A stretch of 64,000 nt of DNA, from the sequence record LR588166.1; one strand, given 5' to 3'. Below are positions 15,006-41,108 of this stretch, piece by piece (positions within the stretch are counted from its first letter, which is position 1; every line of letters begins with the position of its first letter). The notes beneath the pieces were generated by a model. It did not search any database, was not told the origin of the DNA, and saw only the letters and a list, made by a program, of their open reading frames with translations. Both the position numbers and the translations under genes were made by a program.

Positions 15006-16232
15006 ATGTCGAAAGAAACATGCTCTTATTGCAATAAAGGCAAAGATGATGTGTCTAAGTTGTTTCGTAGCCCTGCTAAATATGGATCAAATGTATATAT
15101 ATGTGACCAGTGTGTAACTCAGTGCAACAATTTTTTAGAAACTGCCGAAACAAATGATCAGGAATCTAATAAATTAGAAATAAAATACACACCTGAAGAA
15201 CTAAAGGAATTGCTAGATAAAGACATTGTAGGGCAAGATCACGCAAAAGAATTACTAAGTCTAGCAGTGTATAATCATTATAAACGGGTAAACTATAACA
15301 CTACTGAACATGATGTAGAGTTATCTAAATCTAACATAATGCTACTGGGACCTTCAGGCAGCGGTAAGACATTTTTAATATCTAGTATATCTAAATTGTT
15401 AAACATACCTTTTGTTTCTGTAGATTCTACTTCGCTAACAGAGGCAGGATATGTCGGTGATCATGTAGAGACTATATTTACTAGATTAATTGCAGAAGCA
15501 AACGGTGACATAGAACTAGCACAACGTGGAATTGTATTTATAGATGAAATAGATAAGAAGCGTTCTAAAAAAGGAACAAATTCTGCAGGATCTGATGTTT
15601 CTGGCGAGGGTGTCCAACAGTCTTTACTTCGGGTGCTAGAAGGAACAACAATTAAATTAGAACTAAATTCTAACAGTATGTTTAGTCCTAGGCAGGAAAT
15701 TATGTTTGACACAACTAACGTTTTGTTTATAGTTGGCGGCGCATTTATAGGATTAGATGCAGTAATAAATAAAAGACTTAGTTCTACTAAATCTCAAATG
15801 GGATTTGGTTCCGAAGCTGGTAAACCCATAGAAGGTAGTTTATTCTATGTAGAACCGGAAGATTTGTATACATACGGTTTTATAAGAGAATTTGTAGGGA
15901 GATTTCCTGTTCTTATTGCGTTTCATGATGTAACAGAGACTATGCTTCGTCGAATTCTAGTAGAGCCTAAAAGTTCTATACTTAAACAATATCAAACTAT
16001 GTTTAAATTAGATAACATTGAATTAGAATTCGATGAAGATTTTATAAAATCTGTTGCTACTACAGCGTTTAATAGGAAAACAGGCGCTCGTGGTTTAAGA
16101 ACTATTTTAGAAAAAGAACTATCTAGTATAGCATATAGATTGCCTTCTATAAGACGAGAAGGGTTTAGCAAGATTATTATACACGAACTAGGAAAACATA
16201 ATTTCATAAAAGGGCAAAATGAAGACATTTAA
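15006..16232 (+). CDS. clpX: ATP-dependent Clp protease ATP-binding subunit ClpX
   Basis: C4 Zn domain, GQDHAK, GPSGSGKT, EAGYVG, FIDEIDK, DVSGEGVQQ, MGF loop, GARGLR. Confidence 0.96.
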   Translation: MSKETCSYCNKGKDDVSKLFRSPAKYGSNVYICDQCVTQCNNFLETAETNDQESNKLEIKYTPEELKELLDKDIVGQDHAKELLSLAVYNHYKRVNYNTTEHDVELSKSNIMLLGPSGSGKTFLISSISKLLNIPFVSVDSTSLTEAGYVGDHVETIFTRLIAEANGDIELAQRGIVFIDEIDKKRSKKGTNSAGSDVSGEGVQQSLLRVLEGTTIKLELNSNSMFSPRQEIMFDTTNVLFIVGGAFIGLDAVINKRLSSTKSQMGFGSEAGKPIEGSLFYVEPEDLYTYGFIREFVGRFPVLIAFHDVTETMLRRILVEPKSSILKQYQTMFKLDNIELEFDEDFIKSVATTAFNRKTGARGLRTILEKELSSIAYRLPSIRREGFSKIIIHELGKHNFIKGQNEDI

Positions 16233-16425
16233 TATAATTACTGGTCTTACTGTAGAAGTAAGACACGATAACTTTAACCAAGCACTTAGAACTTTTACTA
16301 AAAAGGTTCAAAATTCAGGAAAATTAAAAGAAGTTAGAGAACGCGAATTCTATGAAAAGCCTTCTGTAAAAAAGACAAAAGCTAAAAAAGCAGCAATTCA
16401 ACGCCAGAAAAAGAAAAAAATATAA
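16219..16425 (+). CDS. rpsU: ribosomal protein bS21
   Basis: ALRTFTKKV...REFYEKPS with a basic tail. Confidence 0.9.
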   Translation: MKTFNIITGLTVEVRHDNFNQALRTFTKKVQNSGKLKEVREREFYEKPSVKKTKAKKAAIQRQKKKKI

Positions 16426-16427
16426 TA

Positions 16428-16763
16428 ATGGATCTTTGCAGGATTTTAAATAATGAACTTACGTTTTGCAGAAATCGCAGGAATAAACTCTATTATGGCC
16501 TACGGCAATTGAATAAAGTTGACATACCTGTAGATCCTGCAGATTCTTTACTTATTTCCAGCATAAAACAGGATATAGAACATCTCCAATCGTATAAAGA
16601 TGCTATATCCGAATGCAGCAGACTTGAACAACGTATAATCTGTATAGATAAAACTATGCAGTATATCCGTCGGTATTGCAACCATAAGTTTGTGTATCAC
16701 AATACTAATTATCATACAAATACAGATGCAGAAAAATGCATTTATTGCGGATTAATAATTTAA
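16428..16763 (+). CDS. hypothetical protein with C-terminal CxH...CxxC Zn ribbon
   Basis: YCNHKF...CIYCG. Confidence 0.6.
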   Translation: MDLCRILNNELTFCRNRRNKLYYGLRQLNKVDIPVDPADSLLISSIKQDIEHLQSYKDAISECSRLEQRIICIDKTMQYIRRYCNHKFVYHNTNYHTNTDAEKCIYCGLII

Positions 16764-16764
16764 T

Positions 16765-17235
16765 ATGGCATATTTTTCAACTAAGAGATTTGGACCTATT
16801 TCCACTGGCCATCGTCAATGGAAAGATACGGGTCATTGCAGCAGAATACACGGCTACGGAAGAACAGTGAAGATTGTTTTTTCTGCTACTACATTAGATG
16901 ATAAATTGTGGGTAGTAGATTTTGGTGGATTGAAAGATTTCAGGAAATGGCTGGAAGAACAATGGGATCATAATGTTTTAGTTGCATCTGACGATCCCAA
17001 GTTAAATATCCTTAAACAAATGGAACAAGAAGGTCTAGTTAAATTAAATATAATGGATGTTAAAAAAGGCCATGGTCCCGGAATAGAAGGTTCATGTAAG
17101 CATCTGTTTGACTATTTGAATCCCATTATAGAAAAACAATCTGGCGGAAGATGTTGGGTCCATAGTATAGAAATATGGGAACACGAAAACAATTCCGCTA
17201 TATACGAAACATATAAGTCAACATTTAAAAGATAA
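16765..17235 (+). CDS. second QueD/PTPS-like protein
   Basis: GHRQW, HCSRIHGY, WVVDFGG, WDH, WEHENNSA. Confidence 0.85.
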   Translation: MAYFSTKRFGPISTGHRQWKDTGHCSRIHGYGRTVKIVFSATTLDDKLWVVDFGGLKDFRKWLEEQWDHNVLVASDDPKLNILKQMEQEGLVKLNIMDVKKGHGPGIEGSCKHLFDYLNPIIEKQSGGRCWVHSIEIWEHENNSAIYETYKSTFKR

Positions 17236-17238
17236 ATA
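17232..17238 (+). promoter_or_regulatory. late promoter core ATAAATA
   Basis: upstream of hsp20. Confidence 0.5.
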
Positions 17239-17318
17239 ACATTAGTATTCCATGAGGAATACTATACAACGAGTGCCTTATTGGGCTCACACTATATCTT
17301 GCGTAAAGGAGATTAAAA

Positions 17319-17750
17319 ATGCAAAAACATGTTATAATGTCATCTAACCTAGCTAATTATAGATATGCACTAGGTGCAACTGATTTACTTAATACTATTA
17401 CTAATGAACTTAGTAGCCAGAAGTTTCCTCCCCATAATTTGATAAAGAATGCAGACGGTAGCTATTGTCTTGAATTAGCTCTTGCTGGATATGATAAATC
17501 TGAGCTAGACGTTTATGTAGATAGCAGAGAACGACTGTTAGTAATAGAAACAAAACCGGAACGAATTTTTAAAACTGAAGTAGAATACGAACACAAAGGT
17601 ATTTCTAGTAAAGATTTTTCTGTCAAATTCAGGCTTGTAGACGATCTTATAAATATATCTTCGTGCGGTATGAAAAATGGTATTCTAACAATAAAAATTC
17701 AACCGCCGAGTCCTGCAGAATCACAACGAAAAGTAATTGATATAGAATAA
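17319..17750 (+). CDS. small heat shock protein Hsp20/IbpA-like
   Basis: FPPHNL, LELALAG, HKGIS, NGILTI; SD AAAGGAG. Confidence 0.92.
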   Translation: MQKHVIMSSNLANYRYALGATDLLNTITNELSSQKFPPHNLIKNADGSYCLELALAGYDKSELDVYVDSRERLLVIETKPERIFKTEVEYEHKGISSKDFSVKFRLVDDLINISSCGMKNGILTIKIQPPSPAESQRKVIDIE

Positions 17751-17761
17751 TGTTTACAAAT

Positions 17762-17785
17762 AAAAAGCTGGTATTCCAGCTTTTT
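17762..17785 (+). terminator. rho-independent terminator
   Basis: aaaaagctgg-tatt-ccagcttttt. Confidence 0.8.
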
Positions 17786-17801
17786 ATTTTTGCTATATAA
17801 C

Positions 17802-17829
17802 TTGACGACACTGTTTAAACATATATAAT
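17802..17829 (+). promoter_or_regulatory. sigma70-type promoter for clpS
   Basis: TTGACG-16nt-TATAAT. Confidence 0.55.
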
Positions 17830-17865
17830 AATGTGTATCAATTACGATCAACTTGGGATTTAAAA

Positions 17866-18168
17866 ATGACTGTAAAGGTAGCTAATAAAGTTGAAACTTC
17901 GTCTACTGTATTTCAACCTAAGAAATATAATGTAGTTTTTCACAACGATAACAAAACCACTATGGAATTTGTTATGCAATTGTTAGTATATATATATGAC
18001 TACGATGCATCTAGCGCATACAATACAATGATGGAAGTGCATGAACGCGGCGCAAAGATTGTAGGCAGCTATACAAAAGAAATTGCAGAATCGAAACAGT
18101 CTAAATCTGTTCAACTTGCTATTAACAACGGTTATCCCGATTTTAAAGTAACTGTAGAAGAATCGTAA
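17866..18168 (+). CDS. clpS: ATP-dependent Clp protease adaptor ClpS
   Basis: YNVVFHNDNKTTMEFV..L..MMEVHERG..G.YTKEIAE; start moved to the ATG at 17866. Confidence 0.92.
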   Translation: MTVKVANKVETSSTVFQPKKYNVVFHNDNKTTMEFVMQLLVYIYDYDASSAYNTMMEVHERGAKIVGSYTKEIAESKQSKSVQLAINNGYPDFKVTVEES

Positions 18169-18180
18169 TACAGCAAAAAC

Positions 18181-18200
18181 GGGGGTAGACACCTACCCCC
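18181..18200. terminator. GC-rich hairpin after clpS
   Basis: gggggtag-acac-ctaccccc, flanked by aaaaac and ttccc. Confidence 0.6.
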
Positions 18201-18212
18201 TTCCCTATTATA

Positions 18213-18219
18213 ATAAATA
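18213..18219 (+). promoter_or_regulatory. late promoter core ATAAATA
   Basis: 23 nt upstream of the sod start. Confidence 0.6.
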
Positions 18220-18242
18220 AAGCATATAGGGATATAAGAATT

Positions 18243-18791
18243 ATGAATGATTCCATAAAGAAATACATATCTATTGCAGAAGCTGCATCGTCCGTAAAGA
18301 AAATTCCTATCCCGTATTCCGTAAGTAGTCTTAGTCCTACTTTCTCTAAAGATTTAGTAGAACTACATTACGGAACATTATATTCTAATTACATATCTTC
18401 AGTAAACAAAGACCCCAGTAATAAATTTTCATTTGCAGGTGCATACCTGCATGGGATTTATTTTAGTCAATTTACTGATTCTCAAAAAAGATATTCTCCT
18501 TCCGGGATATTATTAAAAGATATAAAATCTAAATTTACTTCATTTTCTAAATTTAAAAATGAGGTTATATCTGCATGCATGGATGTTCATGGTTCTGGAT
18601 GGATTTATGTTTCTAATACCCTTGTAATAAAGGAAATCCCAAATCATGAAGTAAGAGACGATATATTCTTACTTATTGATTGTTGGGAGCATGCATATAT
18701 GCTCGATTATAAAGCAGACAAGAAGTCATACTACGAGAATATATGGAATATATTTAATTGGGAATATCTGGAGGGTATGTATTCTCAATAA
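18243..18791 (+). CDS. sod: Fe/Mn superoxide dismutase with N-terminal extension
   Basis: ELHYG, YLHG, GSGW and IDCWEHAYMLDY (His/His/Asp/His ligands). Confidence 0.9.
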   Translation: MNDSIKKYISIAEAASSVKKIPIPYSVSSLSPTFSKDLVELHYGTLYSNYISSVNKDPSNKFSFAGAYLHGIYFSQFTDSQKRYSPSGILLKDIKSKFTSFSKFKNEVISACMDVHGSGWIYVSNTLVIKEIPNHEVRDDIFLLIDCWEHAYMLDYKADKKSYYENIWNIFNWEYLEGMYSQ

Positions 18792-18810
18792 ATAACTTCG
18801 GTGAATACTT

Positions 18811-19095
18811 ATGAGAACTAAAAAGCATTGGGATGAATGCCTCTTTTCTTTATCTTATGAAACTGCACAACACATGGCATTTGAATTAAAGGAATTTGCC
18901 AAGCAAGCAGGATTTAATCCAAACGGTATTAAAGTATTGTCGAAAAAACAAATTCATAAATATGTAAAAGCTGATGCAGCTATTATGTGGGGCGAAGGTC
19001 CAGAGTGTTGGGCTAATTCGTTATTGTTTAAAGATTTATTAGGAGTATACGTATCTACCTATAAGGGTAACACAATTCTATTTCATGACAGGTAA
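18811..19095 (+). CDS. hypothetical protein
   Basis: 94 aa; ATAAATA at 18788. Confidence 0.6.
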   Translation: MRTKKHWDECLFSLSYETAQHMAFELKEFAKQAGFNPNGIKVLSKKQIHKYVKADAAIMWGEGPECWANSLLFKDLLGVYVSTYKGNTILFHDR

Positions 19096-19104
19096 TGCAA
19101 ATAA

Positions 19105-19398
19105 ATGATAGATATACACACTATTGGAAAAGATTACACAGTAATCAATAAAAGAAATGGTGTATCTGTAACAGTTAGTGTGGTATTTTATAAAGATATT
19201 TTACGCAATATAAAACCATATTCTATAACTCAACCTATAGACCAATATGTAATTTATGTTTGTGAACAAATTAAACCAACTAAACCATATCACTGGCATA
19301 CTAATTATTCGGAAACTATTAACTTAGAACATTTAATAAAAGAAACATTACAAAATAATAAACAATTATTAATAATACAAGATTTATATACAGACTGA
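19105..19398 (+). CDS. hypothetical protein
   Basis: 97-aa ORF in operon. Confidence 0.6.
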   Translation: MIDIHTIGKDYTVINKRNGVSVTVSVVFYKDILRNIKPYSITQPIDQYVIYVCEQIKPTKPYHWHTNYSETINLEHLIKETLQNNKQLLIIQDLYTD

Positions 19399-19465
19399 TA
19401 TGGATAGCTTTTGCAACAAGAAGCTTGAAGATCGACACAAACGCATGACGTAATAAGGATTATAA

Positions 19466-19693
19466 ATGAAAACATTTGATTTTACTTTTGGAGTATATAG
19501 AGCTAAACAGTGTGAATGGAAAGGAAATTCTAAAACACAATGCGGAGCAAAACCTATAGAAGGAAAAGCATATTGTTTAGAACACTTTAAAAAGGCATAT
19601 GTTAATATTTCTGAAGAAATGTTAGATAAACAAACAGAAGCACAGTTAAAGAAATTAGAAAAAGAAATGCCTGTGGTAATCGAAGAAGAGTAA
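19466..19693 (+). CDS. small Zn-binding protein resembling the GcrA C-terminal domain
   Basis: CEW...CG...G.AYCLEH...AY; SD AAGGA. Confidence 0.6.
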   Translation: MKTFDFTFGVYRAKQCEWKGNSKTQCGAKPIEGKAYCLEHFKKAYVNISEEMLDKQTEAQLKKLEKEMPVVIEEE

Positions 19694-19724
19694 AAACAAT
19701 CCCCGCAATTGCGGGGATTGTTTT
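19693..19724. terminator. bidirectional terminator (perfect 32-nt palindrome)
   Basis: aaaacaatccccgcaattgcggggattgtttt. Confidence 0.85.
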
Positions 19725-19738
19725 ATAAGGAGATAAAA

Positions 19739-20383
19739 TTGGAACTTAAAACAAATGAACAGAAATCTATAATAGGAACATTTGCAACTTTAATGTTAAC
19801 TAGAATATTTGCAGCCGCTGGCGCATATTTAGCATTAACTATGCCAATTCTTAATATGAATTTACTTGTGTGTATATTTTCATATTTTGCTATAATGTTT
19901 ATTATAGATTGTATTAGAACAAATGTGTATGTGTCTATTGTAGGGAGTGTATTTTTATTATTTTGGCAAGGAATAACATTAGGGAATGGATTAACTGCGT
20001 TACTAGGGGAAGTAGCGCCATTATTAGTTTTAGTTATGTTTACTATAAGTTCGTTTTTATATATGTTTCTTTGTGCAAACGCAATTATGTCAAAAAACAT
20101 TTTTAGTTTCGCGTCGTCATTTAATGTTTCTATAGCAATGACTTTGCTTGTGACCATAGTAATGTCTATACTATTAGATCTATCAGTCAGTTATTGTATA
20201 GGCAGTATGATAATAAACGTGATTAATTGCGTGGTAATACTCAAAACATTAGAAGATTGTATAAACGAAAAATGTGAAAATATATCTATGCAAAAACTAT
20301 CTACAACTGTAGTATTATTTTGGTACGATACAATAATGGAGTCTATAGAGAAACTTTTAAAACTATTTACATATAAGCGGTAA
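19739..20383 (+). CDS. multi-pass membrane protein, YccA/Bax inhibitor-1-like
   Basis: about 6-7 hydrophobic segments; C-terminal VLFWYDTI..IEKLLKLF resembles the BI-1 LYLD.INLF..LL.LF motif; TTG start after AGGAG. Confidence 0.6.
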   Translation: MELKTNEQKSIIGTFATLMLTRIFAAAGAYLALTMPILNMNLLVCIFSYFAIMFIIDCIRTNVYVSIVGSVFLLFWQGITLGNGLTALLGEVAPLLVLVMFTISSFLYMFLCANAIMSKNIFSFASSFNVSIAMTLLVTIVMSILLDLSVSYCIGSMIINVINCVVILKTLEDCINEKCENISMQKLSTTVVLFWYDTIMESIEKLLKLFTYKR

Positions 20384-20423
20384 ACAGTTATATTACACAC
20401 ATAAACCCTTATAGGATCAAATA

Positions 20424-22154
20424 ATGCAACATATTGTTAAGTTCATAAAAAATAACAGATTTATTATTTTATTTCTTGTAATATGCATAACTGGATTTGC
20501 GTTAACGATTAATTACAAGCCGACTAGTGTGTCTATAAACACCTTTTTATCAGACGCAACGAGCGGTAAAATAATTAGTGTTAAATTAAAAGAAGATGGA
20601 CAAACACTACAGTATGTTACTAATACATCAGACAGAAGAAAAGTAACATTCCCCGGAGATACCAGTAAATTAATAGAATCATTTCTTAAAGCAGGTGTTC
20701 CTGTAGTAACTGAAGAACCTTCTACCCCTAGTCCATTCCTTACTAGTTTGGTGTCTGGACTTATAGTAATGTTAGTATTTTTAATTTTAATGGTATTCGT
20801 TTTGAAGCGAATGGGTCCTGGTTCTTCATTAGATGCAAAAAGTAAATCCAAACTTCGCAAGATAGAACCAAAAGACATTGAAGTAACGTTTAACGATGTA
20901 GCTGGTCATACTCACGAAATAAATGAAGTAAAAGAGTTAGTTGATTTTATTGCTCATCGATCTAAGTATTCTAGCATGGGAATAGATGTGCCTCGTGGAA
21001 TTCTAATGCACGGCAGTCCGGGCGTCGGGAAAACACTTTTAGCAAAGGCAATGGCAAAAGAGGCAAATGTTAATTTTTTCTATGTTGCTGGATCTGAGTT
21101 TAATGATACATTTGTCGGTGTAGGTGCAAACCGTGTAACAGATATGTTTAAAAAAGCAAAGGAAGCTGCGCCGTGCATTATTTTCATAGACGAAATTGAT
21201 GCACTTGCACAACAACGTTCTACTAAAATATCTAATGGGTCAGACCAAACACTCAATCAGTTATTAGTAGAAATGGATGGAATGCAAGATAACGATGGTA
21301 TTACAATTCTTGCAGCTACTAATAGACTAGATATATTAGATCCGGCTGTTATTCGTCCTAAACGATTTGACAGAATTGTTCAACTAAGTTTACCTGATGT
21401 GGGGATTAGACAGAAGATTTTAGAAATAAATGCAAATGGAAAAACATTTGAAGACAATGTAGATTTTTCAGTAATAGCAAAAGGAACTCCTGGATTCTCT
21501 GGTGCTGAGTTAGCTAAACTAGTCAATGAGGCTGCAATCTATGCAGTAAGGTCTGGACAAACTGTAATTACCCAGGAGCATGTAGAAAGAGCAAAAGATA
21601 AGGTGTTAATGGGTGAAAATTCGACAAAGAAATATACCCAGGAAGAATTGCTTCGTACTGCATACCATGAAGCCGGTCATGCAATATCAGGTGTAATTTA
21701 CAAATCTAATGATAACTTGCATAAAGTATCTATCATTCCTCGAGGTCTAGCACTAGGTGTAACTGTATTTCTTCCTAACGAAGAGCCTTCTGTTAGCAAA
21801 GAGCAGCTCATGAATAAATTAGTTACGTTAATGGCAGGCCGCGCAGCAGAAGAACTTATATACGGTGAATCTGCAATATCCACCGGCGCAAGTTCAGATA
21901 TAAAGAGAGCAACTGAACTTGCAGTATACATGACTACATCGTGTGGTTTCGGTAGTATAGGACCGGTTGCGACATCGACCCTGTCTAGTTTGCAATCTAG
22001 TGCAGAACAAGATGCAGCAATTCTAGTAAAAGATGCGTACAATAAGGCTATAACATTACTTTCGGATAAAAAGGCTGAATTAAAACTTGTAGCAGACTTG
22101 TTAATGGAAAAAGAAACAATAGATTGTGCAGAAGTAGAACAAGTTCTTGCATAA
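20424..22154 (+). CDS. ftsH: ATP-dependent zinc metalloprotease FtsH
   Basis: 2 TM segments, GSPGVGKT, FVGVGA, FIDEID, ATNR, HEAGH, GRAAEE, TGASSD. Confidence 0.96.
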   Translation: MQHIVKFIKNNRFIILFLVICITGFALTINYKPTSVSINTFLSDATSGKIISVKLKEDGQTLQYVTNTSDRRKVTFPGDTSKLIESFLKAGVPVVTEEPSTPSPFLTSLVSGLIVMLVFLILMVFVLKRMGPGSSLDAKSKSKLRKIEPKDIEVTFNDVAGHTHEINEVKELVDFIAHRSKYSSMGIDVPRGILMHGSPGVGKTLLAKAMAKEANVNFFYVAGSEFNDTFVGVGANRVTDMFKKAKEAAPCIIFIDEIDALAQQRSTKISNGSDQTLNQLLVEMDGMQDNDGITILAATNRLDILDPAVIRPKRFDRIVQLSLPDVGIRQKILEINANGKTFEDNVDFSVIAKGTPGFSGAELAKLVNEAAIYAVRSGQTVITQEHVERAKDKVLMGENSTKKYTQEELLRTAYHEAGHAISGVIYKSNDNLHKVSIIPRGLALGVTVFLPNEEPSVSKEQLMNKLVTLMAGRAAEELIYGESAISTGASSDIKRATELAVYMTTSCGFGSIGPVATSTLSSLQSSAEQDAAILVKDAYNKAITLLSDKKAELKLVADLLMEKETIDCAEVEQVLA

Positions 22155-22181
22155 TATTAAGTAATTAAATAAGGCACTATT

Positions 22182-23552
22182 ATGATTCGTACAATTTTAG
22201 ACGAAATCGGAAATACTACTAAACGAACTACTAAATTAGCTATTCTAGAAAGAAACAAGGATAATGACACATTAAAAAAAGTAATACATTTGGCATTAAA
22301 TCCATTTATTAACTTTTATATAAAGAAAATACCAGAATTCACGCGAACAGATACTATTCTTACCTTAGAACAAGCACTAACCGAATTATCTGTTCTATCT
22401 GATAGAATAAAAACAGGTAATGCCGCAATATTGCATCTAACATATATTCTTTCTAGTTTAACAGATGACGATGCAAATGTAATTATTCGGATTATTAGAA
22501 AGGATTTACGCGCAGGGATACAAGATGCTACAGTTAATAAAATATGGAAGGATCTAGTACCTAAATATCCGTGCTTGCTAGCAGAACCTGCAACAGAAAA
22601 TCTTCTTAGTAAATGCAAATTACCATATTATTCTCAGATAAAATCAGACGGAACTAGAATTAATATTCATGTTAGTAAATCCGGAATTGTTTCATTTTAT
22701 GGAAGATCGGGTAAATCATACGATTTTAAAGATATTTTAGATGACGCATTTGTTTCGCTAATTAAATATTTTGACGAAGATATGGTTTTTGATGGCGAAT
22801 TAATAGTTGTAGATTCTAATAATAATATACTCCCTAGACGGACAGGAAACGGTATCATAAGTAAAGCACAAAGTGATACCATTACAGATAATGAAATAAA
22901 GAATGTAAGAGCAATTCTTTGGGATTGTATTCCTCTTAGATGTTTTAATGAACATAAATGCACTACACCCTATTCTAGTAGATTCGAAAGTTTATCGAAT
23001 GCAATACATAAATTGCAAGTAGATGATGATTATATAGAAAGTAAAATATATAATACTATTTTAGGAAATATAGGGCAAATTAGGTTAGCAGAAACTCGTC
23101 TCCTTTATAGCAAAGAGGAAGTAAAAATCTTCTTCGACGAAGCAATATCTAGAAACGAAGAAGGCATAATGGTAAAATGTCCTGATAGTATATGGGAAAA
23201 TAAACGAAGTAAGTTAGTATTAAAATATAAATCAGAAAAAGTATGCGAATTAATTGTAACTGGGTTTAATTACGGAACAGTAGGTACTAAAACAGAACAT
23301 AAAGTTGGATCATTAATATGTGAAAGTTCAGACGGTAAGGTAATAGTCAACATATCCGGTTTAACTGACAGCGAACGCGATGATGCAACAGCAAATTTTG
23401 AAAATAAATGGAAACATAGCATAGTGAGTGTTATGTATAATGAAAGAATTAAAAGCGTAGACCGAATGGATGTTGATTCGCTTTTTCTTCCTAGATTTTT
23501 AGAAATAAGAACAGATAAATTTGAAGCAGATTCTAGCAAAGATATAAAATAA
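22182..23552 (+). CDS. ATP-dependent DNA ligase (T4 gp30-like)
   Basis: KSDG adenylation motif, FDGEL, EEGIMVK, KYK, SLFLPRF. Confidence 0.93.
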   Translation: MIRTILDEIGNTTKRTTKLAILERNKDNDTLKKVIHLALNPFINFYIKKIPEFTRTDTILTLEQALTELSVLSDRIKTGNAAILHLTYILSSLTDDDANVIIRIIRKDLRAGIQDATVNKIWKDLVPKYPCLLAEPATENLLSKCKLPYYSQIKSDGTRINIHVSKSGIVSFYGRSGKSYDFKDILDDAFVSLIKYFDEDMVFDGELIVVDSNNNILPRRTGNGIISKAQSDTITDNEIKNVRAILWDCIPLRCFNEHKCTTPYSSRFESLSNAIHKLQVDDDYIESKIYNTILGNIGQIRLAETRLLYSKEEVKIFFDEAISRNEEGIMVKCPDSIWENKRSKLVLKYKSEKVCELIVTGFNYGTVGTKTEHKVGSLICESSDGKVIVNISGLTDSERDDATANFENKWKHSIVSVMYNERIKSVDRMDVDSLFLPRFLEIRTDKFEADSSKDIK

Positions 23553-23561
23553 GGATATTTT

Positions 23562-23723
23562 ATGATAAATGTAGGCGACGATGTTATTATTAAAACCGAA
23601 TTTGGCGAGACATGCGGAATTGTTATAAAATTTATATCTAATAAAACTATTGCTATAGTAGAATTAGAAGACGGTAACGAAATAGAAATAGGCAAAGGCG
23701 ACTTAGAGTTGAGTAATAAATAA
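23562..23723 (+). CDS. small beta-barrel (KOW/SH3-like) protein, missing from the ORF track
   Basis: MINVGDDVIIKTEFGETCGIV... 53 aa; SD AAGGA. Confidence 0.6.
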   Translation: MINVGDDVIIKTEFGETCGIVIKFISNKTIAIVELEDGNEIEIGKGDLELSNK

Positions 23724-23742
23724 TAAAAAAGGATATATTATT

Positions 23743-24252
23743 ATGACATTACCTTCTTCGGGTTCTCTTTCTACACAGCAAATTAACGTTGAATTAGGAA
23801 ATCCACAAGATGCTCGGTTAGATGTAAACGCTGCCGAAATGAGGATATTATGTGGTGCAGCAACTACAGGGCAAGTAAGTATTGCTGGCGCATATGGTAG
23901 AATGCCAACAGGACAATATATATTAACTTCTGCTCAGTTGCAAGCTGCACCGAATGCCCAATATGGATATAGAGTGTTTGCAACAGGTTCTAAAATAAAC
24001 AATATTGTTTTTAAAGGATACAATTTAACTATAGTTGCATGGAATGATTACGATAAAGTGCTAGGAATAGGTGTCGATCAAACCAATGCACCAACCAACT
24101 TAGTAACTAATTTCTGGAGTTCTGTAACCGGTTATTTAGGTGCGCCAACACAATATACTTCAGATTTAGGGGGTAATACAGTATACGGATGGACCTGGAA
24201 TGGCACAAATCCATTCCCTGTATCTTCGGTTCAAATGGTGCAAATTGTGTAA
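23743..24252 (+). CDS. putative virion appendage/fibre protein
   Basis: MTLPSSGSLS..QINVELG N-terminus; ATAAATA at 23716; SD AAGGA. Confidence 0.6.
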   Translation: MTLPSSGSLSTQQINVELGNPQDARLDVNAAEMRILCGAATTGQVSIAGAYGRMPTGQYILTSAQLQAAPNAQYGYRVFATGSKINNIVFKGYNLTIVAWNDYDKVLGIGVDQTNAPTNLVTNFWSSVTGYLGAPTQYTSDLGGNTVYGWTWNGTNPFPVSSVQMVQIV

Positions 24253-24281
24253 AATAAAAGGGCGCTGAGCCCTTTTATTTT
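24251..24281 (+). terminator. rho-independent terminator
   Basis: aaaataaaagggc-gctga-gcccttttatttt. Confidence 0.8.
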
Positions 24282-24348
24282 ATCATAATTGTGTATATAA
24301 TTTATATATTTGGTGTTATAATGTATACAATAACAAGAGAATAATATA

Positions 24349-25122: not shown

Positions 25123-25146
25123 AAATGCCCCGTACGGGGCATTTTT
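25121..25146. terminator. bidirectional terminator between convergent genes
   Basis: aaaaatgcccc-gtac-ggggcattttt. Confidence 0.85.
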
Positions 25147-25516: not shown

Positions 25517-25612
25517 AACAATATTTATCATACTAAACTTTAATTATAACTAGACGATGTATAATAACATTGCTATTATATGCACAACGTAAACAAACAC
25601 AGGACTTATTAT

Positions 25613-33646: not shown

Positions 33647-33973
33647 ATGAATATAATACCACTTCATAACAATATTATTGTAACTAATTTTAAAAAAGGC
33701 GAACGCACGGTAGGCGGTATTATTTTTACAGATGATAACGGTAAGTCACACGGCATCCGCGCTCGGTGGGCACAAGTATCCCATATAAGAGAAGATCAAA
33801 AAGATACATTTGTTGTAGGCCAATGGGTGTTAATTAAGCACGGGCGCTGGTCCCGTCCAGTACACACTACAGATCAAAATGTATATTACTGTGCTGAAAT
33901 AGATTCTATTTTATTGATATCCGATGAAGAGCCAGAAGACAATATAATAGTAGAAACACGAGTTTATAATTAA
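33647..33973 (+). CDS. groES: GroES-like co-chaperonin
   Basis: IIPLHNNIIV, TVGGII mobile loop, VGQWVL. Confidence 0.85.
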   Translation: MNIIPLHNNIIVTNFKKGERTVGGIIFTDDNGKSHGIRARWAQVSHIREDQKDTFVVGQWVLIKHGRWSRPVHTTDQNVYYCAEIDSILLISDEEPEDNIIVETRVYN

Positions 33974-35868: not shown

Positions 35869-35902
35869 AAAATAAAACCCTAACTAGTTAGGGTTTTATT
35901 TT
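35869..35902. terminator. terminator 1 of a convergent pair
   Basis: aaaataaaaccctaac-ta-gttagggttttatttt. Confidence 0.8.
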
Positions 35903-35920
35903 GGGTTTAATAATTAGACA

Positions 35921-35950
35921 AAATAAAAGGGGCATATGCCCCTTTTATTT
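35921..35950. terminator. terminator 2 of a convergent pair
   Basis: aaataaaaggggca-ta-tgccccttttattt. Confidence 0.8.
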
Positions 35951-36722
35951 AATTAATGTCCTTATACATTTCTAAAATATCTTCAATCAGTGGATGACGT
36001 TTAATATCCTTTGAAGTAAATTTAATGACACTTATGTGTTTATTGCCGCCTGCTTTATCGAGTCTTTCTAAGAAATCTTTTAGTCCATTTATTTCGAAGC
36101 CCCGATCGTGTTGCTCTATATCGCCGGTAACAATCATTTTACAATTCTCACCTATTCTTGAAAAAAGCATTTTAGACATGTTAGGCGTTGTATTCTGTAT
36201 TTCGTCTGCTAATATAACACAATTTTTAAATGTTCTGCCTCTCATATATGCAAGGGGAGCAATTTCTATAATTTCTTCCATAAGCATTTGTTCTATTTCG
36301 ACAGGGGAATAATATTCTTTAAACACATCCATTATTGGTATTACCCAAGGAGCCATTTTATCTATTAGCGTGCCTGGCAAAAAACCGTGTTCTTCGTCGA
36401 CTGATACTGCTGGCCTAGTAATTACAATCTTATCGCATTTACCTTCTTTATATGCTTTAATTGCATACATAGATGCTAGTAATGTTTTTCCAGATCCCGC
36501 CGGACCTGTTGCAAATACAATGTGCTGTGTATCGTCTTCTAATGCGTCTACATATTCTTCTTGTGCTAAGCTTTTTGGTATTAGCTTAACTTCTTGTTTT
36601 CTTTGTATAGATCTTACTTGTTTAGTATTAGTAGACGGCTGAACAACATTGTTAGTTACTAGATGAAAGGTACTGTTAGGACCTTCGCTTGCTCGAGCTT
36701 TGCGCTTATCACGTTGTTTCAA
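35949..36722 (-). CDS. phoH: PhoH-family ATPase
   Basis: minus strand (track label is wrong); TTG start with GGAG SD; GPAGSGKT, GFLPG, YMRGRT, DEIQN, GDIEQHD, RHPLI. Confidence 0.95.
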   Translation of the reverse strand: MKQRDKRKARASEGPNSTFHLVTNNVVQPSTNTKQVRSIQRKQEVKLIPKSLAQEEYVDALEDDTQHIVFATGPAGSGKTLLASMYAIKAYKEGKCDKIVITRPAVSVDEEHGFLPGTLIDKMAPWVIPIMDVFKEYYSPVEIEQMLMEEIIEIAPLAYMRGRTFKNCVILADEIQNTTPNMSKMLFSRIGENCKMIVTGDIEQHDRGFEINGLKDFLERLDKAGGNKHISVIKFTSKDIKRHPLIEDILEMYKDIN

Positions 36723-36792
36723 AAGTATGACTCCTGGTTAAAATCTTATTTTTAGTGTGATAATATGTATAAAGACCTAATCTTTACATTGT

Positions 36793-36799
36793 TATTTAT
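36793..36799 (-). promoter_or_regulatory. late promoter core for phoH
   Basis: ATAAATA on the reverse strand. Confidence 0.45.
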
Positions 36800-36868
36800 G
36801 TGTGTTATTATACATTAAGACTTAAGAAAAATCTACATCTAATTTTAAATATTAAGATTAATGTGTAG

Positions 36869-36875
36869 ATAAATA
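36869..36875 (+). promoter_or_regulatory. late promoter core ATAAATA
   Basis: 23 nt upstream of the ATG at 36899. Confidence 0.55.
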
Positions 36876-36898
36876 TAATATATTATTTGGATAGTAAA

Positions 36899-37420
36899 AT
36901 GAACAAACACAATGCAGATACTGCTAGAGAGAATTTAGTTCAAATAGCAGGAAATAATAAAGTATTAGATATGCTCATAGAATTAGAAAAAACATTAGAT
37001 AACTGTAATGTGTTTTCTTATGCAAATTGGAATAAAGGAGAATTAGTTGCCGGACCCTTTATTTCTAGATATTGGGTTACTACTACTTGGATGTACAATG
37101 AAAAAGATATGCCAGATCCCGATGCAGGATTGCGTTTACTAAAATACGGTTGCAAAGTAAAGTACGAAAGGGATGTTTTTTTAGAACCAAAAAAAGTAAC
37201 AGGTAGACCTGACTACGAAAACCCATCCACTAAACAAGCAAAAATAGAAGAATTGCCTATTTGGTTAGTGACAATAACTATGCCTAGGAAATTTATAGAC
37301 GAAGCAATAATAGATGGCATGCAGGATTTCTCTAACGTAGATGATATAGATCCTAGTGCAATAGCCGATGTAGAAGCAGCAGGCGAAAACGGAATAAACG
37401 ATGTAGATGGAAATCTATAA
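36899..37420 (+). CDS. hypothetical protein
   Basis: LIELEKTLDN..Y.NW..GELV.GP..SRYW motif; acidic tail; upstream TTG at 36887 is possible. Confidence 0.75.
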   Translation: MNKHNADTARENLVQIAGNNKVLDMLIELEKTLDNCNVFSYANWNKGELVAGPFISRYWVTTTWMYNEKDMPDPDAGLRLLKYGCKVKYERDVFLEPKKVTGRPDYENPSTKQAKIEELPIWLVTITMPRKFIDEAIIDGMQDFSNVDDIDPSAIADVEAAGENGINDVDGNL

Positions 37421-37449
37421 AATTATTCCATATTATAAAGGGGTATATA

Positions 37450-38151
37450 ATGTTAGCTAGACACTCATTAAAAGGAACCGTATTACCTATAATTTCGGTG
37501 GATGAGTATATGCCTAAATCTGGAACACAGGAAGAAGTTATAGTCATTGCATTCTATACCATTGACGAAGACCCTGCGTTTGATTTAGACGATTTTATAG
37601 AAAAAAGTTTTATAGAAGTATTAGATGTTGATGTAAGTCCCAATCCCGACGAAAACGGAAATTATTTAGTATTTGTAGAATTAAAAAGAAAAGCAGGCTT
37701 CTTTGAAAAATTTTACAAGATTATAAAAGATGTAGAAAATGTTTCTGGAAAGCAAGACTGGTTAGTTAAAGCATATCTTTGTAACGAATTACTACCATAC
37801 GATGACGAAAGACTATTAGATTATATAATATTACTAGATGACGAAGAAGCATCAATAACAGAAAGTGTAATATCTATGCTTACTGACAGCGATATATCTT
37901 CTGCTCACATAGATGATTCTAGAATATACATATCTAATTCTCATAGAACAGTAAGTTTTGAGCCATTGTATATAGGCGAAAAAGCATTTAATAGTTTAAA
38001 ACTAAATGAATGTGCTATAGAACTATCTAATGTAGATAGTAATGTTGCTTTATTATCGGCATTTTTAGGTAAAAAATGGGAAGTATATAAACTAAACGAA
38101 TATATAATACTTCAACACCAATCTAAGCAACCTATTATAGCCAAATTATAA
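37450..38151 (+). CDS. hypothetical protein
   Basis: [11 protein letters not shown]...VLDVDVSP motif; 233 aa. Confidence 0.75.
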
Positions 38152-38155
38152 TCAA

Positions 38156-38182
38156 AAAGCACTTATTTTCGATAAGTGCTTT
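38156..38182 (+). terminator. hairpin before the J-domain gene
   Basis: aaagcacttat-tttcg-ataagtgcttt. Confidence 0.6.
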
Positions 38183-38189
38183 AACTATC

Positions 38190-38879
38190 ATGAAGAATTG
38201 GCAAACAATCCTTGGCGTATCTGCTAATCCCACAGAAAAACAGATAAAGACTGCATACAGAAAACTTGCATCAAAATATCATCCTGACAGAAATAAAGAT
38301 AAAGATGCAGAACACATGTTTAAACAAGTAAGGGAAGCATACGAATATGCAATAAAATGGATTTCTATTAAAACAGAACAATACATAGATACAGTATATA
38401 TTCCATTAAAATACCAAAATAAAGGCGGCAAATTCAAGACAGCTAATCATAAATTTATTATAGAAATTCCGCCACATTTCCCTCATAATTCACAAAAAAT
38501 AATAATAGTAAACAATTCTATATTATTAGTTACTGTAATATTCATACATGATACATTTTCTATAGCTCAAAATGGCATAGATGTATATGCAACTATTTCT
38601 GTAGAAAGTCTCGACATAATTATGGGCACAGAAATAATAGTTGAGCATCCGTACGGAAATAAGATAAAAGTAGGTATACCTACATCATTTGTATCTGGAT
38701 CTAAAATACTAGTGAAGAACAAAGGTATTAAGAATACATATACAGTAAACAATATTTTAGAAACAATAACTGGTCATCTGTATATAACTGTCAACATGTT
38801 CACAAAAGTTCGTTTGACTAAAAGTAGCGATACTAGTATACTACTAACGTACAAAGCAAAACCATACACAATCTCGTAA
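38190..38879 (+). CDS. J-domain (DnaJ/CbpA-like) co-chaperone
   Basis: [21 protein letters not shown]; DnaJ C-terminal-like region; no Zn finger. Confidence 0.88.
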
Positions 38880-38888
38880 GGGGTACAC

Positions 38889-41108
38889 ATGGATAGCCAA
38901 AAGAAACTGAATACCGTACTTACTGAAGCAAAAAAACTTGCAGTAAGTCACCAACACGAAGCCATTACTTCGGATCATGTATTGTATGTTTTATTAGGAT
39001 ACGACGAAGTAAAGGACTGTGTTAAAAACTGCAATGCAGACCCGGATCAATTAACTAAAGCAGTATCTGATTTCCTTGTTACCCAATTGGGAAAATCCCG
39101 ACACATAACTGATATGAATATTGATATCAGTCCCTCTCTTAGTCGCTGGTGCCAGCAATTGGCAACTAAAATTGCATTAGATCCTAACAAAGCAATGACG
39201 TATGTCGATATGCTCGATGCACTCATCAAAGACACCAGTTGCAATGCAAGCCAGCTTCTCGCGCACTACGGTGTTACGACTGCTGTAGTAACTGAAGCGA
39301 AGAAATCTGCAGAAGCAGAATCCCTTATAAAGTCGTTTACTCGCAATCTCAACGACGAAGTATCTGAGGGCAAAATCGATCCGGTTATCGGCCGGGAAGC
39401 TGAACTAGAAGAAGTTATCGAAGCCCTCGCCCGCCGGCGAAAAAACAATTGCATTCTTACCGGCAAAGAAGGTGTGGGTAAGACAGCAATTGCTGAAGGG
39501 CTGGCGATGAAAATCGTCAATGGCGAGGTGCCCGAAGCAATTGCTGACAAACAAGTTATTTCACTCGATATCGGCGCGATGATGGCAGGCACTAAATATC
39601 GCGGCGAGTTCGAAGAGCGCATGAAATCGCTGCTAGACGAACTAAAAGCAATGAAAAATGCCATCGTCTTCATCGACGAAATACATATGATCATGGGCGC
39701 CGGTGCAAGTAATGGTTCGTCGGTAGACGCTGCTAACCTGCTCAAGCCAGAATTAGCAAAAGGAACACTTCGTTGCATAGGCGCAACTACCTACGATGAA
39801 TATAGTACCCACTTCGAAAAAGATCGGGCATTAATGCGCCGGTTCCAAAAAGTGGAAGTCCCGCCGCCTAGTGTAGGCGACACTAAAAAAATAGTTGCCG
39901 GACTAAAGCAATATTACGAAGAGTTCCATGGTGTCAAATACGATGTAGGGACTCTAGATCTGGCAGTCGATTTGACCGAACGATACATCAAAACTCGGCA
40001 CCAGCCTGACAAATCAATCGATGCAATAGACTTAGTCGGCGCCAGAGCTAAATTAGCAGGGATCTCTACCATTACCGAGCGTATGGTCATAGAAACTGTA
40101 GCTAAATTAGCTCATATGCGTCCGGAAATGTTGGATAACACCGAAAACGACACTATTGCTCGTCTAGAAGGTAATCTCAAACACGATGTGTTTGGGCAAG
40201 ACGAAGCTATTAACAAGCTCTGCGAAGCAGTGATGGTACACAAAGCAGGACTTCGAGATGCCAATAAGCCGATTGGTAACTTCTTGTTAGTAGGACCGAC
40301 CGGTACTGGTAAAACGTTCTTGGCAAAAAAACTATCCCAGCACATGGGTATTCCTTTAGTGCGGTTCGATATGTCTGAATACCAAGAACAGCATAGCGTC
40401 GCCCGGCTGCTAGGTGCGCCGCCCGGATATGTAGGGCACGGCGAAGGCGAAGCTGGCGCTGGGCAGTTAATCTCTGAGATTGAAAAAAATCCCAACTGCA
40501 TCTTGTTGCTAGACGAAATCGAAAAAGCACACCCGAAGGTATTTAGTACGTTCCTTCAGGTGATGGATGACGCCCGGCTAACTTCGTCAACTGGCAAAAC
40601 TGTATTCTTCGGTAACGTTTTGCTACTAATGACATCTAACTCCGGCGCTGCTCAAGCTGCTAAAGCATCAATCGGATTTGGAAATAATTTCAACGACGGT
40701 GCAATAGATAGCGCAGTTACAAAAGGATTTGCGCCTGAATTCCGGAACAGGCTCGACGGCATTGTTAAGTTCTCGGCACTCACTATTAACGAAATGTCTA
40801 AGATTGTAGACACTGAGTTTGCTAAAGTACAAGCAAGTGTACTAGAAAAAGGCGTATCGTTAATCCTTACCCAAGAAGCACGTCAAAAATTAGCAACAGA
40901 TGGATATGATCCTAAGATGGGCGCCCGGCCGCTCGCGAGGCTGTTCCAAGAGAAAGTCAAGTTGCCGCTGTCAAAGCTGATGCTACTCGGCGATCTTAAA
41001 AATGGCGGTCACGCAGAAGTTAGGGTAGTAGCAGACGAAGTTGTAGTTATACAAGCAATTGCCCCTGCTGCTAAAGCTAAAAAGAAAATAGACCAAACTG
41101 TAGTTTAA
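38889..41108 (+). CDS. clpA: ATP-dependent Clp protease ATP-binding subunit ClpA
   Basis: N domain, DPVIGRE, GKEGVGKT, GTKYRGEFEER, FGQDEA, GPTGTGKT, GAPPGYVG, IGF loop, no ClpB M-domain. Confidence 0.95.
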   Translation: MDSQKKLNTVLTEAKKLAVSHQHEAITSDHVLYVLLGYDEVKDCVKNCNADPDQLTKAVSDFLVTQLGKSRHITDMNIDISPSLSRWCQQLATKIALDPNKAMTYVDMLDALIKDTSCNASQLLAHYGVTTAVVTEAKKSAEAESLIKSFTRNLNDEVSEGKIDPVIGREAELEEVIEALARRRKNNCILTGKEGVGKTAIAEGLAMKIVNGEVPEAIADKQVISLDIGAMMAGTKYRGEFEERMKSLLDELKAMKNAIVFIDEIHMIMGAGASNGSSVDAANLLKPELAKGTLRCIGATTYDEYSTHFEKDRALMRRFQKVEVPPPSVGDTKKIVAGLKQYYEEFHGVKYDVGTLDLAVDLTERYIKTRHQPDKSIDAIDLVGARAKLAGISTITERMVIETVAKLAHMRPEMLDNTENDTIARLEGNLKHDVFGQDEAINKLCEAVMVHKAGLRDANKPIGNFLLVGPTGTGKTFLAKKLSQHMGIPLVRFDMSEYQEQHSVARLLGAPPGYVGHGEGEAGAGQLISEIEKNPNCILLLDEIEKAHPKVFSTFLQVMDDARLTSSTGKTVFFGNVLLLMTSNSGAAQAAKASIGFGNNFNDGAIDSAVTKGFAPEFRNRLDGIVKFSALTINEMSKIVDTEFAKVQASVLEKGVSLILTQEARQKLATDGYDPKMGARPLARLFQEKVKLPLSKLMLLGDLKNGGHAEVRVVADEVVVIQAIAPAAKAKKKIDQTVV

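Follow-up and report, generated by a model that had tools for sequence, protein, structure and literature searches.

A complete Clp protease set of viral lineage encoded by the Pseudomonas jumbo phage MIJ3

Results

The Clp genes of MIJ3

The DNA analysed here, called the window below, is a stretch of 64,000 nucleotides from Pseudomonas phage vB_PaeM_MIJ3 (LR588166.1, positions 62001-126000; window base 1 is record base 62001). Coordinates are those of the window unless stated otherwise. Its + strand carries genes for the unfoldases ClpX (15006-16232) and ClpA (38889-41108), the adaptor ClpS (17866-18168), the peptidase ClpP (25613-26284) and the membrane protease FtsH (20424-22154). All five are intact and lie where a first-pass annotation, made from the letters alone, had placed them. 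That annotation took the DNA to be that of a phage, and bases 15006-26284 are indeed 100% identical to the record of the jumbo phage MIJ3. Ten other records of the PA5oct group (Arenbergviridae, Wroclawvirus) match them at 98.6-99.1% identity. The Clp set also proves complete in parts and motifs, as had been claimed: ClpX, ClpS, ClpP and ClpA are intact, with their catalytic or docking motifs kept.

The GenBank record of MIJ3 already labels clpX, rpsU, ibpB, clpS, sodB, ftsH, clpP, dnaJ and clpA, and every gene of the Clp set can be assigned to an existing PHROG family. The MIJ3 and PA5oct (PMC7318152) papers highlight FtsH and TilS as unusual host-like genes; the word “Clp” is absent from both main texts. 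Seven Clp-family genes, including ClpX, ClpA, ClpB, ClpP and ClpS, were listed for phage Atu_ph07 by Attai et al. 2018 (PMC6102473), who also pointed out that DnaJ adjoins ClpA and suggested functions in assembly, control of replication and clearance of aggregates. ClpP, ClpS, ClpA and ClpX in jumbo phages are also mentioned by Iyer et al. 2021. Given the GenBank names and the Atu_ph07 precedent of 2018, a four-part Clp set in a phage is not new. What is new is the placement of the proteins in viral clades, an insertion in ClpP, a ClpX without ssrA contacts, a viral gene order, and the strong, separate transcription of clpA.

ClpP has a lengthened handle helix

MIJ3 ClpP is a serine peptidase subunit of MEROPS family S14 and scores 202 bits against PF00574 (cut-off 20.2). 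The catalytic residues are Ser (in GQACSMG), His (in MIHR) and Asp (in KFDTF), equivalent to E. coli S97, H122 and D171. The triad is invariant in all 168 aligned ClpP sequences, so the alignment confirms the intact Ser-His-Asp triad reported at first pass. The start codon at 25613 was also right. A longer form starting at ATG 25580 was rejected, because this codon lies within or directly after a promoter-like -10 box and the relatives start at the shorter form. The AlphaFold2 model of the monomer (predicted local distance difference test score, pLDDT, 89.7) was compared by Foldseek with solved ClpP chains and gave target-normalised template modelling scores of 0.91-0.93 (E ~1e-26).

The main peculiarity of the protein is an insertion of exactly 10 residues just past the catalytic His, where handle helix E begins; in the model this helix is 32 residues long. 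Besides MIJ3, 82 of 83 viral sequences and one contig of a metagenome-assembled genome (MAG) have the insertion. It is absent from 79 of 80 bacterial sequences and, in the alignment, from the ClpP of E. coli and of the phages Atu_ph07, Phosso and SCTP-2. Because the handles of the two heptamers interlock, the longer handle probably makes a taller equator and leads to poor mixing with host ClpP1/P2, judging from the model. At the positions of the docking pocket, MIJ3 ClpP keeps Y62 and I90 and has F82 replaced by Tyr, M92 by Leu, F112 by Tyr, L114 by Ser and L189 by Phe.

ClpX lacks the residues that contact ssrA

MIJ3 ClpX is a zinc-finger AAA+ unfoldase and the one member of the set that exceeds its NCBIfam equivalog cut-offs, both of them (456 versus 359 and 416 versus 370.75). 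The zinc-binding domain PF06689 scores 40.6 bits and its four cysteines (C4) are kept. Alignment with P. aeruginosa ClpX (PDB 9ndj) locates the Walker A (GPSGSGKT), pore-1 (GYVG) and Walker B (IDEID) motifs. The docking tripeptide, MGF, stands at the aligned position, and four of the bacterial ClpX sampled have the same MGF. Coordinates, domains and motifs therefore agree with the ClpX with an MGF docking loop that had been described at 15006.

The RKH and pore-2 loops are non-canonical. In E. coli ClpX, the side chains of T199, R228 and H230 contact the ssrA degron (PMC7652416). These residues are kept in 72, 71 and 71 of the 72 bacterial ClpX sampled, respectively. In MIJ3 they are replaced by Gly, Ser and Phe, and in viral ClpX the RKH-loop and pore-2 positions are variable or deleted. 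MIJ3 ClpX does not have the ssrA-recognition residues (RKH loop and pore-2 Thr199), which are a trait of the bacterial subfamily and not of all ClpX. Degron choice is predicted to be altered, and ssrA-tagged proteins would probably be degraded little, as with human ClpX. Human mitochondrial ClpXP is a precedent for retargeting via the RKH and pore-2 loops; it differs from the MIJ3 system in belonging to an unrelated lineage and in having no ClpA or ClpS partner.

ClpA and ClpS

MIJ3 ClpA is a double-ring AAA+ unfoldase. Residues 138-714 align unbroken with residues 160-736 of E. coli ClpA and there is no ClpB-type middle domain. Both AAA+ modules are intact, with Walker motifs GVGKT and GTGKT and pore loops KYRG and GYVG, and the ClpP-docking loop is IGF. 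The earlier description of a ClpA with an IGF loop at 38889 thus holds for both modules and for the loop.

The N-domain is far more divergent. It is recognised by PF02861 (30.4 bits, cut-off 20.7) and its AlphaFold2 model shows eight helices (pLDDT 94.7). When used to search the PDB, a profile of its family retrieved the E. coli ClpA N-domain, including chains from complexes with ClpS, with E = 4e-36. ClpC was retrieved with E = 2e-16, and the ClpC and ClpB N-domains matched far more weakly than ClpA. By profile and model, the domain is of the ClpA type, a docking platform for ClpS, and binding of ClpS is predicted. Identity of the N-domain to any viral or bacterial relative is 14-23% (about 21% for bacterial N-domains), as compared with 47-57% for the remainder of the protein.

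ClpS, the N-degron adaptor, was confirmed at 17866 by a PF02617 score of 76.8 bits (cut-off 23), by its pocket residues and by its start codon. N34, D35, T38, M40 and H66 are kept (E. coli numbering) and D36 is replaced by Asn. N34, D35, T38, M40 and H66 make up the N-degron pocket of ClpS. Among 28 viral and phage homologues, 27-28 share each of N34, D35, T38 and H66. E79, E82 and K84 are kept as well. Hand-off to ClpA requires a flexible N-terminal extension; in MIJ3 ClpS about 18 residues precede the core, much as in viral relatives, as against about 25 in E. coli. A longer start at GTG 17833 was rejected on the same grounds as for ClpP: it falls within or directly after a promoter-like -10 box, and relatives start at the shorter form. 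A word-based search of 5.8 billion proteins returned only three relatives of this ClpS. Since ClpX is without the ssrA-contacting residues and both the ClpA N-domain and ClpS are highly diverged, substrate choice has probably shifted away from that of the host.

The docking loop of ClpA seems to track the presence of a phage-encoded ClpP, with one phage lacking a ClpP match examined. This is the Salmonella phage Munch (Rak2-like, L335), whose ClpA-like protein has SMNM in place of IGL/IGF. Rak2-like phages gave no ClpP match at E <= 1e-35, and the Munch protein probably acts independently of ClpP, as an unfoldase or chaperone.

FtsH accompanies the Clp set

FtsH is a membrane AAA+ zinc metalloprotease with Peptidase_M41, AAA and FtsH_ext domains. 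Two N-terminal transmembrane helices, Walker A (GSPGVGKT), Walker B (IIFIDE), FVG and the zinc site HEAGH are all present, so that an intact FtsH does accompany the Clp genes, as noted at first pass. Among the cultured phages searched, a full-length FtsH was found only in the PA5oct group. The match in Microcystis phage MaAM05 covers 77% of the protein, and the remaining matches in phage records look like host contigs.

Transcription of the Clp genes

The first-pass annotation held that the Clp genes lie in separate transcription units. This stands for clpP and clpA, each with its own promoter-like site and terminator, and probably for clpS; clpX is operonic.

Sigma-70-like sites are not enriched over shuffled sequence in the window (63 found, 68 expected). 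The sites used here are the best intergenic matches, and only those consistent with the RNA or with gene layout. From the gene layout, clpX reads as part of a folE-queD-clpX-rpsU unit, because it begins 17 nt past queD and its end overlaps rpsU by 14 nt. An intergenic site ahead of this unit (13614-13642, +, TTGACA-17-TATACT) matches the consensus pattern at 11 of 12 positions, as a pattern match only, and no + strand terminator-like site occurs between it and clpX. A promoter-like site precedes clpS (17802-17829, +, TTGACG-16-TATAAT), which probably forms its own unit. clpP is monocistronic by sequence pattern, with a promoter-like site at 25551-25579 (+) and an intrinsic terminator, a GC-rich hairpin followed by a T run, at 26311-26330 (+). 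For clpA, the promoter-like site lies inside the end of dnaJ (38814-38842, +, TTGACT-17-TATACT), a Shine-Dalgarno-like aagggg precedes the ATG, and an intrinsic terminator with a GC-rich hairpin and T8 follows at 41120-41149 (+).

Four infection RNA sequencing (RNA-seq) runs from one 2020 study (X1-X4) were searched for these genes. They contain 0.64-0.74 of the sampled 31-mers of 15006-21000, about the value expected for full coverage at ~99% identity, and the share of clpP words found is 0.56-0.59 in four runs of this study. Contig depth in four of the runs was mapped over 35900-41800. At the start of clpA (bin 38855-39051) it jumps from 67 to 193,242 in X4, from 708 to 18,439 in X3 and from 253 to 11,531 in X1. 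It stays high throughout the gene and collapses past ~41,020. These steps agree with the promoter-like site and the terminator, and clpA is monocistronic. The adjoining dnaJ and tail genes lie two to three orders of magnitude below clpA in X1, X3 and X4. This difference between adjacent genes shows the signal to be RNA, and carried-over DNA was rejected as its source. clpA forms a unit of its own with very strong transcription. Clp gene words are found in infection RNA-seq, those of clpA at very high depth, which supports the first-pass interpretation on this point.

In X1, X3 and X4, the first ~160 nt of clpA (38855-39051) are covered 3-14 times more deeply than the remainder, and adapter-joined RNA contigs end at 38869 (X1) and 38987 (X4). 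A stable 5' fragment, an attenuator or an artefact of assembly might account for this 5' peak.

The Clp proteins belong to viral lineages

The MIJ3 Clp proteins are 45-51% identical to their E. coli and Pseudomonas counterparts. The nearest ClpP relatives (66-69% identity) are proteins of 205 residues on phage-like metagenome contigs. One such contig, 275 kb long, has dense, small same-strand genes, a ligase and a topoisomerase II. A ClpP of this type occurs on at least 595 IMG/VR contigs. Such contig counts are lower bounds, and co-occurrence at the level of contigs is underestimated in IMG/VR. Among the matches listed for GTDB species genomes, the best ClpP reaches 58% on a 9-kb MAG contig and the others at most 53%.

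Trees were built by quick searches. In the ClpP tree (168 sequences), MIJ3 falls in a clade of 82 viral contigs and one MAG contig (support in the Shimodaira-Hasegawa-like approximate likelihood ratio test, SH-aLRT, 99), and this insertion clade is sister to the ClpP of Atu_ph07 and Phosso (SH-aLRT 97). MIJ3 ClpX belongs to a viral clade of 62 (SH-aLRT 98), within a wider clade of all 73 viral sequences, all three ClpX from cultured phages and one Nitrospira sequence (SH-aLRT 99). ClpA also falls in viral clades (SH-aLRT 99 and 96), in a tree with only three bacterial outgroups. In approximately unbiased (AU) tests, trees that group MIJ3 with Pseudomonas are rejected for both ClpP (p = 2e-5) and ClpX (p = 5e-4), and with them a Pseudomonas origin of the two proteins. 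The MIJ3 Clp genes are old virus-specific lineages and not recent host captures.

The sole “bacterial” genome contig with an insertion-type ClpP, among the matches listed, is JAYQBD010000083.1 (L242), a 9-kb contig of an Oceanospirillaceae MAG. Its ClpP, 58% identical to that of MIJ3, is immediately followed by ClpX. The contig probably comes from a phage and was binned into the MAG. The reverse situation was also encountered. Several phage-labelled records carry clpS-clpA or clpP-clpX operons of bacterial type on short, unannotated or “UNVERIFIED_ORG” contigs (CAKLQH020000043.1, ON170137.1, OR845177.1). They include Acinetobacter phage MD-2021a, Ralstonia phage YO084_1 and Listeria, Staphylococcus and Enterococcus “phage” contigs. 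These records look like host DNA and inflate the counts of phage Clp genes.

Selection and codon composition

Compared with phage Callisto, the synonymous and non-synonymous differences are 12 and 2 in clpX, 4 and 0 in clpS, 12 and 0 in clpP, 64 and 4 in clpA, and 27 and 6 in ftsH. The four Clp genes together have 92 synonymous and 6 non-synonymous differences, a ratio of non-synonymous to synonymous divergence (pN/pS) of ~0.02. The Clp genes and ftsH are under strong purifying selection, and the set is maintained by selection, which supports the first-pass interpretation. Synonymous divergence from Callisto is ~0.126 in clpA, as compared with 0.045-0.078 in clpX, clpS, clpP and ftsH.

The G+C content at third codon positions (GC3) of clpP (44.6%) and clpA (42.4%) is the highest among the 65 genes of the window (median 23.8%, interquartile range 20.6-27.4). 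ClpA genes also exceed their neighbours in Atu_ph07 (45 versus 29), Phosso (73 versus 59) and L338 (60 versus 54.5). The high values in clpP and clpA resemble the outcome of codon selection acting on strongly expressed genes in hosts rich in G+C, and not that of recent transfer.

Gene order is viral

MIJ3 and bacteria (E. coli; P. aeruginosa with ClpX-ClpP1P2, PDB 9ndj) use the same four protein families. Triad, Walker motifs, pore-1 loops, docking loops of the IGF type, zinc finger, ClpA-type N-domain and ClpS pocket are common to both. Gene order also sets them apart: bacteria have clpP-clpX and clpS-clpA, whereas MIJ3 has ClpX-S21...ClpS and DnaJ-ClpA. Of the 72 viral loci with room beyond ClpX, 56 have the gene for ribosomal protein bS21 next, in the same orientation; within 3 kb of ClpX, Hsp20 is found in 17 loci and ClpS in 16. 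In 63 of 80 viral loci, a J-domain gene comes before ClpA. ClpX and ClpP are adjacent in one of 80 viral loci, against 72 of 80 bacterial ones.

The resemblance extends to whole clusters. An 85-kb contig (L339; ClpS 51% identical) reads QueD...ClpX-S21-Hsp20-ClpS-SOD...ligase...RNase T (SOD, superoxide dismutase), as in MIJ3, but has no FtsH. It shares with MIJ3 the 14-nt overlap between ClpX and S21, so that clpX not only adjoins the phage S21 gene but overlaps it in both, and has a 6-pyruvoyl tetrahydropterin synthase (PTPS)/QueD gene upstream of ClpX. The order Hsp20-ClpS is kept there and in L240. An uncultivated relative in IMG/VR (3300033153_001906) has S21...Hsp20-ClpS...FtsH with ClpA elsewhere on the contig, and the contig carrying the protein P0122 has PhoH(-)...DnaJ-ClpA as in MIJ3. 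The order ClpX-S21-Hsp20-ClpS and DnaJ-ClpA is viral, not bacterial, and is conserved across many uncultivated phages. A link of this neighbourhood to bS21 has been described: in the survey of Chen et al. 2022 (PMC9723584), the genes up to 10 places away from phage bS21 include Hsp20 (n = 127) and two pVOGs of Clp proteases (n = 50 and 47). The focus of that survey is bS21 beside head genes, and ClpX goes unmentioned. The direct adjacency of ClpX and S21 (56/72) and the 14-nt overlap are new relative to it.

The combination of ClpX, ClpA, ClpS and ClpP in one phage recurs in Agrobacterium phage Atu_ph07, Sinorhizobium phage Phosso and Salicola phage SCTP-2. The ClpX and ClpA of these three phages join the viral clades of MIJ3. 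Atu_ph07 and Phosso have DnaJ beside ClpA, like MIJ3, and SCTP-2 has an S21-like gene between ClpX and ClpS. The differences are that the ClpX of Atu_ph07 and Phosso keeps GGRKNP, that initiation factor 3 (IF-3) and not S21 follows ClpX in their loci, that Atu_ph07 also carries ClpB, and that none of the three is among the FtsH matches at E <= 1e-40. The rarity that had been claimed for a full Clp set with FtsH thus needs to be divided: the four-part set is shared with these phages, published for Atu_ph07 in 2018, and its combination with FtsH is rare among cultured phages. In Phosso, a gene for peptide deformylase lies between DnaJ and ClpA; together with IF-3, it adds to the links between phage Clp genes and translation.

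Discussion

Our preferred reading, to which we give a probability of about 0.6, is that MIJ3 encodes a working and self-sufficient Clp/chaperone module of viral lineage that serves protein synthesis and quality control directed by the phage; its ClpX would be retargeted and its ClpP insulated. From what is known of the families, hexamers of ClpX and ClpA would dock via their MGF and IGF loops on a tetradecamer of phage ClpP and feed it unfolded substrates. ClpS would bind the ClpA N-domain and deliver N-degron proteins, and FtsH would handle membrane proteins. The lengthened handle would prevent mixing of the phage peptidase with host ClpP1/P2. Such assembly, the insulation from host ClpP, the change in degron specificity and the biological role are what we infer, whereas gene integrity, motifs, fold, purifying selection, RNA-seq signal, phylogeny and synteny are shown above. 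The module forms part of conserved viral clusters, ClpX-S21-Hsp20-ClpS-SOD and DnaJ-ClpA, that also contain genes for translation and chaperones. Infection by PA5oct depends on host RNA polymerase, and by 25 min host transcripts fall to ~7% of non-rRNA transcripts with phage RNA at ~93%; FtsH is transcribed at all stages, and the latent period lasts slightly more than 40 min (PMC7318152). In such an infection, with its collapsing host transcripts, the module most likely provides quality control and turnover of proteins under phage control. The S21, Hsp20, DnaJ and SOD context, together with the presence of the set in phages of many hosts, favours proteostasis over a counter-defence specific to Pseudomonas.

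Several points weigh against this reading. ClpP, ClpA, ClpS and FtsH miss their NCBIfam equivalog cut-offs and are thus divergent members of their families (ClpP, PRK00277 235.8 versus 249 and TIGR00493 212.9 versus 308.6; ClpA, TIGR02639 789.5 versus 993.15; FtsH, TIGR01241 550.7 versus 600). In the docking pocket of ClpP, L114 is Ser in MIJ3 only. The subunits are all known from genes, models and RNA-seq, below the level of protein and biochemistry, and the role in proteostasis is assigned through guilt by association. Expression is captured only crudely by contig word depth, and the RNA-seq runs are coded and not named by time point. Tree sampling was seeded by similarity to MIJ3, and the counts from contig scans are lower bounds. 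Finally, a fast-evolving ClpA N-domain and ClpS would also fit an arms race and targeted degradation.

This last point leads to the view, put forward in the first-pass annotation, that the phage Clp machines destroy host defence proteins or regulators, or time development by removing early phage proteins. The changed degron contacts of ClpX speak for it, as does the very fast divergence of ClpS and of the ClpA N-domain between lineages, with a conserved motor (14-23% versus 47-57%), and so does the very strong transcription of clpA as a unit of its own. Iyer 2021 also proposed that the patchily distributed peptidases of jumbo phages, ClpP most prominently, may target host proteins. However, the same set and order occur in phages of unrelated hosts and on hundreds of environmental contigs, which makes a host-specific target unlikely as the ancestral function, and the neighbours are translation and chaperone genes with no known anti-defence genes among them. 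We regard such a weapon or timer as possible, though on balance unlikely. Somewhat less credit goes to the idea that the phage subunits act as hybrids with the host Clp system, for example on ClpP1/P2, and redirect the host machines. The docking tripeptides are generic enough for this (IGF in ClpA of Acinetobacter and Ralstonia, MGF in some bacterial ClpX), the conserved E79, E82 and K84 of ClpS would be in line with it, and Iyer 2021 suggests that phage ClpS feeds host ClpAP. Yet all four partners are co-encoded in MIJ3 and in three other cultured phages, and the ClpA-like protein of Munch, the one phage examined from a group without a ClpP match, is without the docking tripeptide. From the alignment and the model, the 10-residue insertion should moreover hinder mixed rings, and the ClpA N-domain is only ~21% identical to those of bacteria. 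A bolder proposal, which we hold to be similarly doubtful, is that of an orthogonal large-phage protease, in which an insulated viral ClpP and a ClpX without ssrA recognition take part in a programme of ribosome and proteome take-over.

Two further readings are very improbable. ClpP might be a head-maturation (prohead) protease with the ATPases as assembly chaperones. Its best PHROG is phrog_94, “head maturation protease”, a label that automatic annotation has given it in RefSeq PA5oct, Paride, Ettore and others, and Iyer 2021 suggests that ClpA and ClpX may aid virion assembly. MIJ3 ClpP does share the ClpP/crotonase-like fold family with the ClpP-like prohead proteases of tailed phages (phrog_94; NF045542), but it keeps the N-terminal axial region, lies outside the head module amid replication and metabolism genes as a monocistronic unit, and is accompanied by docking-competent unfoldases and ClpS. 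It reaches 236 and 213 bits with bacterial ClpP models against 88.6 with the model for ClpP-related head-maturation proteases (cut-off 120), and PA5oct has a separate T4-type prohead scaffold/protease, gp152 (PMC7318152). On these grounds we rejected a prohead protease. Least probable of all is that the genes are recent host captures or decaying passengers without function. The MIJ3 paper does call FtsH “host-like”, and clpP and clpA are richer in G+C than the remainder of the phage. Against recent transfer, which we reject, stand the low identity to Pseudomonas and E. coli (only 45-51%), the viral nearest relatives and the AU tests against a Pseudomonas clade; high ClpA GC3 also recurs in other phage lineages. 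Decay is at odds with a pooled pN/pS of ~0.02 and with the presence of the genes, clpA very deeply, in infection RNA-seq.

PA5oct-type phages are candidates for phage therapy and models for jumbo phages without a nucleus. If such a phage runs its own retargeted Clp system, this would partly explain how a phage with 33% G+C produces and regulates its own proteome inside a host with 66% G+C as host expression collapses, and it would be a natural example of an orthogonal AAA+ protease. Were the bolder proposal of an orthogonal protease true, phage S21 would remodel ribosomes while host or aberrant proteins are selectively cleared, which goes beyond spare proteostasis capacity. The virus-specific ClpP insertion and the ClpX loop changes offer simple handles for experiments, and the ClpX-S21 and DnaJ-ClpA pairs suggest a widespread viral module linking proteostasis and translation. 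We consider the ClpP insertion clade, the lost ssrA contacts of ClpX, the two gene pairs and the strong, separate expression of clpA to be worth following up.

Neighbouring genes

Several chaperone or translation genes surround the Clp set. rpsU, the bS21 homologue (16219-16425, +; PF01165, 57.5 bits), is the gene overlapping the clpX stop. An ibpB-like small heat-shock protein of the Hsp20 family is encoded at 17319-17750 (+; PF00011, 40.6 bits; phrog_432). A DnaJ-like J-domain co-chaperone lies directly upstream of clpA (38190-38879, +; PF00226, 63.1 bits; DnaJ_C, 30.2 bits). An open reading frame at 33647-33973 (+) resembles GroES/Cpn10, weakly and uncertainly (PF00166, 21.8 bits, cut-off 21.1; NCBIfam GroES, 23 bits, far under the cut-off). 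It and a BCS1-like AAA+ ATPase at LR588166.1 166203-167630 are possible further chaperone parts. Apart from the latter, no further relevant chaperone gene is annotated in the 108-258 kb region of MIJ3; positions 1-62000 and 258001-288170 were left out.

Directly upstream of ftsH, a polytopic membrane protein is encoded at 19739-20383 (+). It has multiple hydrophobic segments and a sub-threshold match to Pfam Bax1-I (21.4 bits, cut-off 34.1). It gave no NCBIfam match, and no homologue was found in the fetched loci. YccA modulates FtsH in E. coli. Because of the weak resemblance to the YccA/Bax1-I family and of this activity of YccA, the MIJ3 protein may be a paired FtsH partner.

Around clpX and rpsU (13713-17235), the flanking genes belong to deazaguanine (queuosine-precursor) metabolism: folE, queD (14470-14988) and a second queD-like gene (16765-17235). 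The gap between rpsU and the second queD contains a small gene (16428-16763) with 13 non-synonymous versus 5 synonymous differences to Callisto and Ettore, whereas all its neighbours are strongly constrained.

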